From Setoptus koraiensis (taxonomy: Eukaryota > Animalia > Arthropoda): a DNA stretch of 64,000 nucleotides. Under the pieces are notes generated by a model, which made no database searches, was not told the origin of the DNA, and worked only from the letters and a program-made list of their open reading frames with translations. How positions within the stretch are numbered: position 1 is the stretch's first letter; each line of letters begins with the position of its first letter. Position numbers and translations under genes: made by a program. Shown piece by piece: positions 18,001 through 22,800 of this stretch. Location: the NCBI GenBank assembly GCA_048013815.1, contig CM106586.1:17174001-17238000 (forward strand), given 5' to 3'.

Positions 18001-20935
18001 TGGGAATCAGTGACGGTAGCGATGATTGATTGAGGCCCATGTAGCCCATGTTGTACGCTGGCGGACCATAGAGGCTGGTCGGTCGCAAAGTGAATATGTC
18101 GTCCACGAGAACGTCGTTGATGTAACCGAGCGTGGTCATGCGACCAACGTGCAACCCCGCAGCAAATATCTTGTGTCCCGTGATGATCTGCTGGCCGGCC
18201 AAGTAAGTCTTGACGGAATCGCGCAACAGCGACGTTAGATTTATGTGCCCGTTGATCAGTGTGTCGATAAACAACTCTCTGACGTGAACGGGGCCCACGA
18301 AGTCGACGTTGCCCGTCATGACCAGTGTGTTTTGGCGATTGTTTTGGTCGTGGGGCGCCAGCGGGATGGCGCTGTCGACTATGCGCGACACATTGTGTCC
18401 GTTGAGAAACGGGTGCGGATGCTGAAATTTAACATTTCTGGCGGTCAAACTTGCGAACGTTTTGCGGCCAGTTAAGACAGTGGGGGCCGGCTTGTTATCC
18501 AGTGTTACGAATTCGTCCAGTCGGATGCCGTTGAGCGTCGAGTTGGGCGCCAGCACGAGCGAGCCCGCGTCCACCGACACAAAGTCCAGCGGACTATCGA
18601 TTATCTGCCAGTCCTTGGACGTTACGTCCACGGCGTCCCTCAGATAGTGCTGGCCGTTGATTTTGCCCACGATCTCCAGCTTGTCGGCCACCACGGCGCC
18701 CCTGAACCAAGTGTGCGATCTGATGTTTTGCTCGCCGCTTAAAGTGATGGCCTCTCGCTCGAGTTGCCTGAACGGCATTCCATTGAGCCTAACGTCGTCG
18801 TTTTGTATACCTGACGTAAATATGACTTGGCGCGCCACCAATCCGTTCAAGAAGCGCGTCTTGCCCGTGATGATTGAGTGGGAGTTTGGGTGAACGGCAT
18901 GGCTCAGCTTCTTGGTGATGGCGTCCAATAGGGCGCGAGCCGCATTTAGATTGGCGTCAAAAATGGCGGGCGATATCGGGGGCTGCGGGCCGCGGTATTG
19001 TCGCGGCTGCTGGTGCTCGCGATACTGGCCCGAGTTGTTGCTCGATGTGATCATGACCATCTGGGGCGACTTGATAAGTGCACCCCTGACAATCACGTTG
19101 CCGTGCACGACCACGGGCGACGTGATGCTGACCACATCGCGGCCGTCCTTGCGCCAGACGCTGTCCTTGCGGGCGTGTAATTGCTCCAATTGTCGCTCTC
19201 GCGTCAGCAGGATCCGCTCCAGGTCTCGAAAACATTGTTCGGGATTGTTGGCCAGCAGCGACTGGTTGACGAATGGGGCGCCCATCGGGCCGGCGCCGGC
19301 CAGCGACGAATTATCGGTGAGCCTGTGCACTTGAACCCTGTGATTGGCCCCACCGGCCAGCGCGTAGACGCGATTCATGGTGTCGTGATTCACGAGCTGC
19401 ACTGAGCTGACTCCACTTAGGCTGTCGCTCGATAGTATCGGCTGAAAGCTCTTGCCCCCGCCGCTAGAGGGCGAGGGGGCGAAAAAGTGGAGCTTATTGT
19501 CCGACTGGGACAGCACACTGAGCAGCGTTGTTGTTGAGTTGGGCAGGAGCCCGATGGACAAATCGGCGGCGCCCTGCGCGATCAGCTGCTGCGGCCAAAA
19601 TTGCCTGTCCATGGGCGACCAAATGTAAATGGCGACCCCCTCGCTGGTGCCGAACACCAGAAACCCGTTTTGGCTGTAGCTGGTGGGCAGGGTTTGCTGG
19701 CTGGGGTTGTCGACGTACAGCCACGGCTCGGGCGTTTCGCTGAAGAACTGCACCTTCCGGGCCTGGCCCAGCAATTTTATGTACTGATGATAGGCGATTT
19801 GAATTTCGTGGTTTCGCCGGAATCTGAACACGGCATTCCCGACAAATTTGTTGTTTCCGCTGTCCATTACGTCGGCGTTGTTGCTCTTGGTCACAACCAA
19901 ATAGGACGAGTTGGCGTGCCGAGACAGTCGCGCCTCGAACAATTGTTGCTGGGCGACCGCTATGTAAAAGTGATTGATTATTTTGAACATTTTCACCGAA
20001 TGGGGCATCGCGTGGGTGTTCACCGTGATCTGCAGATCGAACTGGGTCCTGGTCCAGGCGTACAGCTCGAGATTGTCCGAGGTGCGCTGGTGCGCTATGC
20101 TCATGTAGCAGTGCCGCCGGCTGAAATTAATGTCGTAATCGGCTATGAGGCCGGTGGTGAAAATAATCGTTTGCGACGGCTTGATGTGGGGCCTATGCTG
20201 CTGCACCTTGGCCTTGTAGATTTTCACCAGACTCAGGGTTGTGGCCCCGGTGCCGTTGTAGTTGGGGCCCGGTTTCGCCATCGCCGCTGCCGCTGATGAG
20301 GCAAATCTGTTGTTGTTGTTGTTGTTGCTGTTGTCGTCGCCGGCATACTGCCAGATCAGATTGTTGTAGGCCACAATGTAGTACACCGAGCTGTAGCTCG
20401 GTTCATAGAAGTAGCCCAGTTTGATGGGCCGAAATTGGCGGATGTCAATTGTGGATTTGGGCGTCTCGTCCTCTATTCTGATAGATGCAACCTGTTGTAA
20501 ATTTTTGTTCAACTTGATAATGTCCAGTGAGTTGTCGGCACGCGAACACAACACCGACAGGTCCGTGTCATTTTTCTTGCTCAACGACGGCACCCAGGCG
20601 GCCAGCTCGCAGTCGAGCTCGACGGGGCGCCGGTCGAGGGTCAGTGTGGATTGACAATGGGCTAATTTACTCGTTGCCACCAGTAACGTCAGTAGTAGGG
20701 AAAATAACAATAACGGAAATGATATCTTACCGTCTTGTGGATTTTGGAGATTGACATAGGCATTTACAAGCGAACGACGGGTGATCATGTCTCGGCAGAC
20801 ACGTATGGATAATACGGGACCAGCCGTTGAGAAACGTTCAAATAATGTGGCCTCAGTGACATCGGGTGTTAGATCGCCAACATATAATGAGGCCATAGAC
20901 GATGATGATGGAGGTGCTGCTGGTGTCGAGTTCAT
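15008..20935 (-). CDS. Chimeric ORF, 1975 aa: PABP exon-1-derived residues 1-68, six intron/junction residues, a signal-peptide h-region, then ~1,900 aa of a large extracellular protein with EAR/EPTP-like ends and repeated (Q)xITGxKTF-type motifs (Closca/Nasrat/Polehole-like by recollection, unverified)
   Basis: Single uninterrupted ORF. The first 221 nt align to 50673-50893. [20 protein letters not shown]|Q looks like signal h/c regions. The family assignment is from memory of motif patterns only. Confidence 0.8.
16020..16290. repeat. Proline-rich coding repeat (PPALIS-type, 21-bp unit x5-6, plus PPPPTPVL units)
   Basis: GGTGGCGGTGATATTAACGCT units on the plus strand. Confidence 0.9.
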
Positions 20936-22759
20936 CTATACGCTTGCTTGTTTTTATACAACTTTCATACTGTTGTCATACACTTTCATACAATATAATA
21001 ATTTAATTAATAATTTAATAATTTCCGTTCGAGAGAAACGCATGTGTGAGAGCGCCAATGTCAAATGAAAATAGTGTTGGACCAAATGTGTATTTTGATG
21101 TGCCAACTTTTGAAGGGCGGGTAAGCACATTCTGTCAAATGTGCCAAGGGGTTGTCCCATTTTAGGGTATTTTCATTTTTGGTCTTCGATTCTTGAAAAT
21201 AGGGTATGCATGTTGCCTGAAACACCCGATACTGTGTTGCAGTGCCCTCCGGTGAACAACAACAGGTTTATGTGTGGCGAACTGTTTACGGCGAATGGCA
21301 GCATGGCGTCGTTTGCACACATGCAAAGGCACGCCACTCAAATTTATCATTTCGCGCCCCTAGGCTACATTTCACAAAGTTACACTTTGCACAACAATGC
21401 CAAACCGAACCTCTCAGGCACATTTGCCACTTCTGGCTTCCGCTAGATTTGTCCCAAATATTGCACAGAATTGCGATTGCATCAAGTATTGGCGCCAATA
21501 CCGTAGGTGCACGCAAACACCAAAGAATCGGTAATATTTCGCTACAAACCAACTCATCACTGCAGACTGGCATCAATCTTTTGTTCACAATTGCTGACAT
21601 TACCAGATAACATACAGTAAAAGTGATTGTAAAATTACGCCATGGACAACACATTTTACAAACAACTGAGAATTTTCGACCAAAGGCTCAAATCGCTGGA
21701 AAAACATTATGATAAGGTTCAACGAGAAAGTGTAAAATTGCACAAGGATCTGGAGCAAAATCTTAGTCTCAAGAATACCTTGGAGGATCGAATGAGAAAA
21801 CGTGTCGAGGACATAGACAAACTGTATGCCGCAAAAATGCGCGAATGCAAGGCTCAGTATGATCTGTTTCAAAATATGTACATAGCTCGGGAAGAAGAGC
21901 ATAAAAACCTCAAGGATTACATCAATAGCTATGAAATGGAGGAGAAACAGAAGATCGACAAGGAACCCGAGACTGCTATCAAGAAACAATTCGGCAACTT
22001 GCATTCATTGCCTGCCAAATTCAAAGTAATCCAAGAGAAATACAACAACTTAAAAGAGTTGAATGAACATATATCCCGTGATCTAGATCAGCTCATGAAA
22101 ATATTGAAAATGTCACGTGAATCAGGTAAGATGAACCCTTTTTTGCACTTCAACACTAACCTCTAATACGTCATTGATAACAATTGGTAACGTTGAATCT
22201 CGCTATTAATTTTCCTTTCATCGAAACAACAACTCATTAGTTCAAAAGGCCAAAAAATACCGTGATGCGTTTGAAAGAACAAAGGATCATCAAGAGGCTA
22301 CAATTGAAAGACTACACAGGGACACAAATCAACTGAATGTAGTCATTTCACAATACTGTCTGACTGATTGTATCAACGATAAAATCATATCCAATGTACG
22401 TGCTAAATGTGCTTTTAGCGTTGCTGATAATGATGAATTTACTCTAAATACTCTCAGAAAGCACAAACAAAAGCAGAGCAAAATAATCGAATTGTTGACT
22501 CATAAGCAAAAAGTTAATGAAAGAGATAACAGTATACTTACAGTGGAAAACGAAAGTGTTAAAGGACTGATGAATTATTACACTGATGTGATTAACAAGG
22601 CCAATCAAAATCGATACGTGGATGTAGAATTTTAGTGTGAATATCGATCAACAACTGATCTAAGAGGCGAAAAATCAATTATAGAAATCAGACGGTCGAT
22701 ATATATATTATCAATTATTATATAAAGTCCGGGGACATCGTTTTTATTATCATTCTAAC
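20715..22759. repeat. Inserted inverted duplicate (2,045 bp) of 48556-50893
   Basis: Reverse-complement alignment by eye. Boundaries: ...GATATCATTTCC (20715/50893) and CATTCTAAC (22759/48556). TAAC lies at both 20711-20714 and 22756-22759. Confidence 0.95.
21642..22635 (+). CDS. Uncharacterised coiled-coil protein, copy A (in the insert), exons 21642-22125 and 22241-22635, 292 aa
   Basis: GCCATGG start with an in-frame stop upstream at 21630. Phase-1 intron of 115 nt (CAG|GTAAGA...ATTAG|TT). Exon 2 translated by hand is open to TAG 22633-22635. E/K/L-rich, heptad-like. Confidence 0.85.
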
Positions 22760-22800
22760 CACCGGCCAGTACCGTGTGAATGTTGCTGCTTCGGGCGCAT
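22760..22800 (-). pseudogene. Orphaned original start of the large secreted-protein gene (ATG at 22800, MRPKQQHSHGTGRW), now terminating in the insert after LE*
   Basis: ATG CGC CCG AAG CAG CAA CAT TCA CAC GGT ACT GGC CGG TG| joins in frame to |G TTA TTG TTA... at 20714 when the insert is removed. Confidence 0.75.

Follow-up and report, generated by a model that had tools for sequence, protein, structure and literature searches.

A probable recent dispersed duplication that interrupts a predicted signal peptide and grafts a PABP exon in frame onto its gene in Setoptus koraiensis

Insertional duplications with microhomology or blunt junctions have been explained by NHEJ, by MMEJ or by FoSTeS/MMBIR involving a single template switch, and such junctions do not tell these mechanisms apart (Gu et al. 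2016, PMC5120786). In Drosophila, the young chimeric gene Hun Hunaphu arose when part of a gene was duplicated at the DNA level into a distant location (Arguello et al. 2006, PMC1463047), and chimeric genes from duplications are reported to segregate in populations (Rogers et al. 2014, PMC4069613; review in Katju 2012, PMC3449122). Here we analyzed a 64-kb window of arthropod DNA (64,000 nt, whose numbering is used throughout), in which an inverted copy of one stretch lies inside a gene 26 kb away. We favor, with a probability of about 0.75, a recent DNA-level dispersed duplication that placed an inverted copy of a 2.3-kb stretch within codon 14 of the host gene, in its putative signal peptide. 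As in the cases of Gu et al. (PMC5120786), a segment was copied rather than moved, often in inverted orientation in that series, to a non-adjacent site with junctions that share 0-5 bp or are blunt; those events are constitutional, human and tens of kb to Mb in size, whereas this one is a fixed evolutionary event of 2 kb in an arthropod. Like Hun Hunaphu (PMC1463047), the locus holds a young partial gene duplicate placed elsewhere by illegitimate recombination and contributing to a chimeric coding region. However, Hun recruited intergenic sequence, while here the fragment is fused in frame inside the signal peptide of another gene, and Hun is backed by testis expression and selection tests, while the present chimera is a predicted one, read from its open reading frame (ORF). 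The other Drosophila chimeras (PMC4069613, PMC3449122) likewise bring together, by duplication, a gene body and the 5′ end, with its upstream region, of a different gene, but they are mostly tandem and span two neighboring genes, whereas this duplication is dispersed and inverted and carries a whole extra gene.

A repeat search and alignment identified the insert at 20715-22759 (2,045 nt) as an inverted copy of the donor segment at 48556-50893 on the plus strand, which remains intact. The copied content comprises the whole of a gene that we call gene X, with its intron, the intergenic region between gene X and the poly(A)-binding protein (PABP) gene and, from PABP itself, exon 1 with the first 16 nt of the intron that follows. 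A retrocopy is ruled out by the gene X intron, the intergenic DNA and the 16 intronic nucleotides. The PABP/gene-X pair and both of its flanks are conserved at 80-86% identity in a contig of a relative (L001), and in the PABP part the insert and the donor agree at 20 sites where L001 differs. Judged from these alignments, the donor locus is the ancestral arrangement, and the insertion post-dates the split from this nearest available relative. An earlier note, made from the letters of the window, had proposed that the insert was copied from a locus 26 kb away; the alignment bears out a copy at the DNA level, and the relative's contig supports the direction of copying.

The high resemblance of the two copies (95-99%) can confuse assemblers, and a mis-join or collapse could in principle have put donor sequence into the host gene. 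Two contigs address this directly. One of 487 nt spans 20346-20796 and one of 1,985 nt spans 22730-23600, each with 0 mismatches and each present both in DNA sample X1 and in the independent sample X2. Their depths were 162/160 in X1 and 191/169 in X2, against 160-215 in the flanks. Because contigs from two independent DNA samples, which come from different studies, cross both junctions at single-copy depth, the insertion is genuine and not an assembly artefact. Indels, replaced segments and 28 substitutions that set the copy apart from the donor argue further against an artefact, and we consider the chance of one negligible. The insertion is homozygous, on all chromosomes sampled in the two DNA samples. 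A contig that skips the insert was sought in three DNA samples (X1, X2 and X5) and none was found among their contigs, which drop rare variants.

The letters at the two junctions agree with what the earlier note had reported, namely a 4-bp microhomology at one and a blunt join at the other. At the upstream junction, TAAC (22756-22759) is common to host and donor and may derive from either; the donor plus strand starts with GTTA at 48556-48559, which, given the inverted orientation of the copy, is the same 4-mer. TAAC also occurs at 20711-20714, on the host side of the downstream junction. This second junction has no common bases: the insert ends in CATTTCC, where the donor continues AGCT and the host continues GTTA. 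By our own calculation a 4-bp overlap is expected in ~1-2% of random blunt junctions, and the observed overlap is modestly above chance. An 11-nt direct repeat between the insert (22744-22754) and the host 5′UTR (22804-22814) lies in AT-rich sequence and was judged to be a chance match.

The presence of TAAC on both sides, together with a high-copy repeat inside the insert, might suggest a transposon-like transduplication with TAAC as a 4-bp target-site duplication. However, the donor natively starts with the same 4-mer, in an ordinary locus conserved in the relative, so that a target-site duplication would require a 1/256 coincidence. Terminal inverted repeats were sought at the insert ends and none was found, nor are there LTRs or poly(A) at these ends, and the repeat lies within the insert and has no donor counterpart. 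A transduplication is therefore very unlikely. Under the favored reading, a dispersed duplication, the two junctions (4 bp and 0 bp of overlap) would have been made by end joining or by a replicative template switch. Of the earlier proposal of a templated insertion primed by microhomology, the copying and the junction types stand, but the copy is not a simple colinear one of its template, and microhomology priming is one of several mechanisms that yield identical junctions.

Donor positions 49984-50176 (193 nt) and 50440-50650 (211 nt) are absent from the copy, and the alignment also reveals a 14-nt indel, a 24-nt internal duplication and the 28 substitutions. Copy and donor diverge by 1.2% on the gene X side and by four times as much on the PABP side. 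Both missing stretches and the small internal duplication map to what is left, in rearranged form, of the PABP upstream region and 5′UTR (20958-21318, minus strand), within which 133 nt (21074-21206) have no donor counterpart. This replacement includes the high-copy repeat (~21140-21208), whose depth is 900-1,100 compared with ~165; no second copy of the repeat was found within the 64-kb window, and an Rfam search of the insert gave a sub-threshold snoRNA match only. The missing stretches, the 133-nt foreign patch and the 24-nt duplication all cluster on one side of the copy. This complexity may reflect later mutation and decay or, equally, template switches during the event (FoSTeS/MMBIR).

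The insert interrupts codon 14 of a minus-strand host gene. Its stranded start (22760-22800) consists of the ATG at 22800, with an in-frame TAA two codons upstream, and 12 more codons (MRPKQQHSHGTGR, to 22762), followed by TG, the first two bases of codon 14. After this TG the minus strand now reads GTTAGAATGA, giving an ORF of 16 codons plus a stop (22750-22800) that ends in WLE, with the stop inside the insert; the 16-aa peptide ending in LE described in the earlier note is thus present. On the other side of the insert, the minus strand is coding from 20713 downward and open until the stop at 15008. This host gene body (15008-20714) contains the rest of the putative signal peptide, including the h-region, a predicted cleavage site between AHC and QS, and ~1,880 further codons. 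From homology, the host is a predicted single-exon gene encoding an arthropod EPTP-family secreted protein of ~1,900 aa: relatives share 36-39% identity over >97% of residues 600-1420 (E down to 1e-149), and the nearest Atlas clusters carry EPTP (Pfam PF03736). A Pfam search of the host protein itself returned no match at E<=0.01.

When the host N-terminus was joined with an X placeholder at the break and read from the stranded ATG, a hydrophobic core was found at residues 16-26 behind an n-region of charge +3. In 12/12 relatives the hydrophobic core lies within residues 3-26, and this agreement in position would fit a signal peptide that ran across the break, as the earlier note had suggested. 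When a close orthologue of the host was sought by word-index searches, the relatives recovered were all at 26-39% identity, and the length filter of these searches probably removed short fragments of the relative's assembly. Searching exhaustively with the 400 residues that follow the break gave matches of 32-39% identity only, and an exact look-up of the product predicted from the 487-nt junction contig gave no record. The parsimonious pre-insertion allele would be the two host pieces joined exactly; the best relatives are 36-39% identical and no empty allele was found among the contigs of three DNA samples, and a multiple of three host bases may also have been lost at the break.

The insertion also supplies a candidate new start for the reading frame. 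The coding part of PABP exon 1, which lies at 50673-50877 (plus strand) in the parental gene and is spliced to exon 2 at ~51148 in RNA from run X7, is present in the copy at 20731-20935 (minus strand), with its ATG at 20935, and encodes the N-terminal half of RRM1 (RRM_1, E=1e-10). Between it and the host lie the first 16 nt of PABP intron 1 (20715-20730, minus strand), whose GTAAGA donor site is now read through as codons. The copied exon is in frame with the host body, and the result is a 1,975-codon ORF (15008-20935) with RRM_1 at its start and EPTP-family sequence beyond. The signal h-region can now be reached in frame only from ATGs within the copied PABP exon. It falls at residues 76-86 of the chimeric ORF, and the 75-aa n-region ahead of it carries a net charge of 0, an unusual arrangement for a cleavable signal. 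Much of the PABP 5′UTR, and possibly the start site, appears to be absent from the copy, because donor positions 50440-50650 are lacking and the PABP mRNA contig extends at least to 50488; this loss would count against calling the chimera a 'promoter capture'. As the break lies upstream of the predicted cleavage site, the mature protein would be the same from any start that still brings the h-region to the translocon.

The host gene is probably still functional, because its 5.7-kb ORF is unbroken and a low-depth RNA contig (210 nt at 20002-20211, depth 3.8, X7) covers part of its body; the host body is also present by word share in X9. Alternatively, the insertion killed the host gene and left a young pseudogene; the in-frame PABP fusion would then be a matter of chance, with odds of one in three, and the long ORF would be intact because too little time has passed for it to decay. 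Several features agree with such a loss: no RNA contig crossing either junction, including 20714/20715, was found in the X7 run, the host RNA depth is very low and confined to that single 210-nt piece, much of the PABP 5′UTR is lost from the copy, the h-region of the chimeric ORF does not begin until residue 76, and on the gene X side copy and donor have diverged by only 1.2%. However, 5.7 kb of ORF persist without a stop or frameshift, whereas neutral change of 0.6-2.3% per lineage would, by our own estimate, which for frameshifts uses Drosophila indel rates, have introduced 1-5 new stops and several frameshifting indels; the host body is, in addition, found in X7 RNA contigs and, by word share, in X9. 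We consider a pseudogene possible but unlikely.

A further alternative is that the old promoter still drives the host gene and that part of the insert is spliced out as a new intron, which would bring the old ATG and the h-region back into one frame. The host body does yield RNA, and by eye one in-frame pair can be found, in which a weak GT within the stranded start would be matched with an AG close to where the copied PABP exon ends. Both candidate splice sites are weak, however, X7 has an RNA depth of 0 at 22775-23600, on the upstream side of the old ATG, and its contigs gave no joint of this kind, which makes this alternative quite improbable. Removal of the insert by splicing at the junctions themselves was also considered and rejected, as the GT/AG pairs seen by eye give a stop or the wrong frame.

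The rest of the insert carries a complete second gene X. The copy (21642-22635, plus strand, antisense to the host gene) encodes a coiled-coil protein of 292 aa in two exons (21642-22125 and 22241-22635) separated by an intron at 22126-22240, and the parental gene (48657-49659, minus strand, transcribed divergently from PABP) encodes 295 aa. Both are intact and differ at ~7 coding positions, 2 of them replacements. A spliced gene X RNA contig from X7 bears the insert-derived A at 22254, and this one diagnostic base in one contig suggests that the copy is expressed; such Logan contigs collapse variants, and mosaic contigs were seen in X1. Searches with the gene X product gave sub-threshold coiled-coil noise only in Pfam and no credible family in the Atlas; one relative, at 61%, is without a name.

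Taken in order, the favored dispersed duplication would have copied 2.3 kb of donor DNA, inverted, into the signal-peptide codon 14 of a gene 26 kb away and left the donor intact. It would have severed the old ATG, put the ATGs of the copied PABP exon in frame and given gene X a second intact copy, with the mature secreted protein unchanged whichever start still delivers the h-region. As an example of a dispersed duplication joined by microhomology and yielding an in-frame chimera, the locus is clean but unremarkable, and it points to no new kind of mechanism. It is a doubtful extension that this genome may often repair breaks by copying kb-scale local templates and so repeatedly make chimeras with swapped 5′ ends, as a lineage-wide habit.

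Young dispersed duplications that are fully resolved are uncommon, and here the junctions, the donor, the outgroup and the intact host ORF can all be read. In a single event one gene (gene X) was duplicated whole, an exon of a second (PABP) was grafted in frame onto a third, and the putative signal peptide of the latter was split. The locus therefore offers a natural case for asking whether the one-sided excess of changes in the copy reflects selection, later decay or error-prone repair synthesis, and whether a secreted protein can cope with 75 extra N-terminal residues in front of its signal core.

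One event duplicated the whole of gene X (a small coiled-coil gene), the region between it and the divergent poly(A)-binding protein (PABP) gene, and the first PABP exon. A repeat search, alignment and BLAST together bear out the earlier proposal that the sequence interrupting the minus-strand host gene was copied from this locus, five inverted-repeat blocks connecting 20715-22759 with 48556-50893. In the block-by-block map built from the alignment and BLAST, insert 22759-21318 corresponds to donor 48556-49983 (17 mismatches and a 14-nt indel), donor 49984-50176 is not in the copy, and insert 21319-21207 matches donor 50177-50287. 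Insert 21206-21074 and donor 50288-50366 are unrelated; insert 21073-21012 corresponds to donor 50367-50428 (5 mismatches), the 24 nt at 21004-20981 to donor 50416-50439, with donor bases partly used twice, and insert 20957-20715 to donor 50651-50893 (11 mismatches), while donor 50440-50650 is absent from the copy. A short high-copy repeat at 21140-21208 (word depth 900-1,100, against ~165 in the flanks), with several differing loose ends at its edges (21140-21146 and 21208), sits in a 133-nt insert patch matched neither by the donor nor by any other part of the window.

Logan contigs of four runs were placed on 18600-23600. DNA run X1, which leads in word share, is probably the assembled sample; DNA run X2 is another sample from another study. 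Both junctions are covered with 0 mismatches, by a 487-nt contig at 20346-20796 (depth 162 in X1, 191 in X2) and a 1,985-nt contig at 22730-23600 (160 and 169), and the flanks on both sides have depths of 160-171 in X1 and 166-215 in X2. The 1,985-nt contig includes 30 nt of insert, the maximum for a k=31 unitig before shared sequence begins, and donor-type contigs end exactly at 20715 and 22759, continuing into donor flank. None of the contigs from DNA runs X1, X2 and X5 (the last at low coverage) joins 20714 to 22760, as an empty allele would, but contigs drop rare variants and a rare empty allele may have been missed. The insertion is real and apparently homozygous.

The stranded host start lies at 22800-22762 (minus strand) and consists of ATG, 12 further codons (MRPKQQHSHGTGR) and then TG, after which the strand continues GTTAGAATGA; an in-frame TAA stands two codons upstream of the ATG. 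Read downward from 20713 on the minus strand, the host body has no stop until 15008. TAAC (plus strand) occurs at both 20711-20714 and 22756-22759, and the donor start, 48556-48559, is GTTA, its complement. All letters quoted in the earlier note are present at these places, and the present ORF from the old start indeed ends after 16 codons. In the alignment, GTTA (gene sense) is common to host and donor at the upstream junction and zero bases are common at the downstream junction; by our calculation, at least 4 shared bases are expected at ~1.5% of random blunt joins, or ~3% for either of two junctions. Just inside the insert (22744-22754) and again in the host 5′UTR directly before the stranded ATG (22804-22814) stand the same 11 nt, TTATTATCATT; this exact direct repeat is near the junction but probably a chance occurrence in AT-rich sequence.

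The presence of introns and intergenic DNA in the copy excludes a retrocopy, and a transposon is unlikely because the insert lacks terminal repeats and the flanking 4-mer is native to an ordinary conserved donor gene locus. The insert could have arisen by end joining of a copied fragment, by synthesis-dependent repair priming on 4 bp, or by a replicative template switch that departed after GTTA and resumed 4 bp back. Each of these routes implies that a single GTTA was there beforehand; with two native copies of it, the two host pieces would be out of frame. The earlier claim of insertion primed by 4-bp microhomology with a blunt other end stands for the junctions themselves (4 bp and 0 bp), priming being one of the three routes. 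According to Gu et al. (PMC5120786), NHEJ, MMEJ and FoSTeS/MMBIR cannot be told apart by junctions that are blunt or share 1-5 bp when there is a single template switch, and the same applies here. Insertional inverted duplications with such junctions are already known (PMC5120786), as are young chimeric genes from DNA-level partial duplication, Hun Hunaphu (PMC1463047) among them; the present locus is a well-resolved fresh example of a known duplication type, not a novel kind.

The protein collection contains just one close relative of gene X, P0010 (61% identity), encoded on a relative's 5.5-kb contig, L001, that carries the same head-to-head PABP/gene X pair. The 48-51 kb locus is the ancestral one, because L001 matches it (80-86% similarity) well past the copied segment on either side. 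Within the PABP part there are 20 sites at which insert and donor are alike and L001 is different, so the duplication is younger than the split from this relative; the relative's species should carry an uninterrupted host gene. Gene X evolves fast (61% protein identity over exon 1, L001 3413-4404 versus window 48657-49659), beside a PABP exon 1 with zero amino-acid changes between window and L001.

Divergence within the copy is uneven, with 11/243 sites differing on the PABP side versus 17/1,428 on the gene X side (Fisher p = 0.001; p = 3e-5 with neighbouring blocks added). Polarised with L001, the PABP-side differences are 8 insert-derived, 2 donor-derived and 1 ambiguous, and the gene X-side substitutions 7, 6 and 4, respectively. 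Three insert-derived changes convert the RNP1 motif of the copied PABP exon from LGYAYVNF to LVNAYVNL, and three further insert changes fall in the short retained 5′UTR; every structural rearrangement of the copy is also on the PABP side. The RNP1 changes (20747-20770; G to V, Y to N, F to L) are all the amino-acid changes of that exon, and two, in adjacent codons, may have arisen together in a single mutation. Possible explanations of the imbalance are relaxed constraint, selection acting on a new N-terminus, gene conversion in the gene X part, and error-prone synthesis at one end of the copied tract; the numbers of changes are too small to choose among them.

The gene X copy is a complete two-exon gene (21642-22125 and 22241-22635, plus strand) encoding a 292-aa coiled-coil protein, its 115-nt GT..AG intron confirmed by a spliced RNA contig; no family could be assigned from Pfam, protein-collection relatives or the Atlas. 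It differs from its 295-aa parent (48657-49659) at two residues and at the last few, the latter due to the 14-nt indel just before the stop (22632-22645 versus 48670; tails VDVEF in the copy, VDVELIYN in the parent), whose ancestral state the L001 comparison did not resolve. The copied first coding exon of PABP (minus strand; ATG at 20935, end at 20731; Pfam RRM_1, E = 1e-10) is followed by its GTAAGA splice donor and 16 nt of intron. For the retained donor at 20730, an AG at 20663-20662 could serve as the in-frame acceptor, and a branch-like CTGAC lies ~27 nt upstream; this candidate 69-nt intron (20662-20730, minus strand) would take out exactly the hydrophobic signal core. Other window genes contain CAA/CAG-rich (polyglutamine-type) coding repeats at 24618-24780, 31101-31242 and 38904-39776.

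After the break, the host protein has no Pfam match of its own and no toxin or injected-effector marks. It aligns near full length with 1,600-1,750-aa proteins at 36-39% identity. Mite proteins with the EPTP domain align at 26-28%, and its nearest Atlas clusters are arthropod EPTP proteins; its family is a conserved extracellular one. When the first 110 residues of relatives were examined, the most hydrophobic 11-mer fell within residues 3-26 in 12/12, preceded by a short n-region of positive charge. If the window is read from the stranded ATG, X standing for the broken codon, this core is at 16-26 and the n-region has a charge of +3; the present 1,975-codon ORF has the core at 76-86, and the 75 residues before it carry a net charge of 0. 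The proposed ancestral start is supported by this comparison, but the relatives are too remote for a test of the residues themselves.

Upstream of the core, in-frame starts are now limited to the ATG of the copied PABP exon and two Met codons within it. One 210-nt contig of RNA run X7 falls in the host body (depth 3.8), and the spliced gene X contig has the insert-derived A at 22254, its sole diagnostic site; no transcript across either junction was seen among the X7 contigs. The parental PABP mRNA contig reaches at least 163 nt upstream of the end of copy similarity, to about 50488, within a donor stretch missing from the copy, which therefore lacks much of the PABP 5′UTR and perhaps its start site. 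Promoter capture is hypothetical here. That the host gene is a young pseudogene is a serious alternative, though the less likely one, since its ORF is intact across 5.7 kb and neutral decay at the observed divergence should have broken it (our estimate, assuming Drosophila-like indel rates). Continued function is the likelier state for this reason, and also because signal cleavage is predicted to fall downstream of the break, which would leave the mature protein unchanged.
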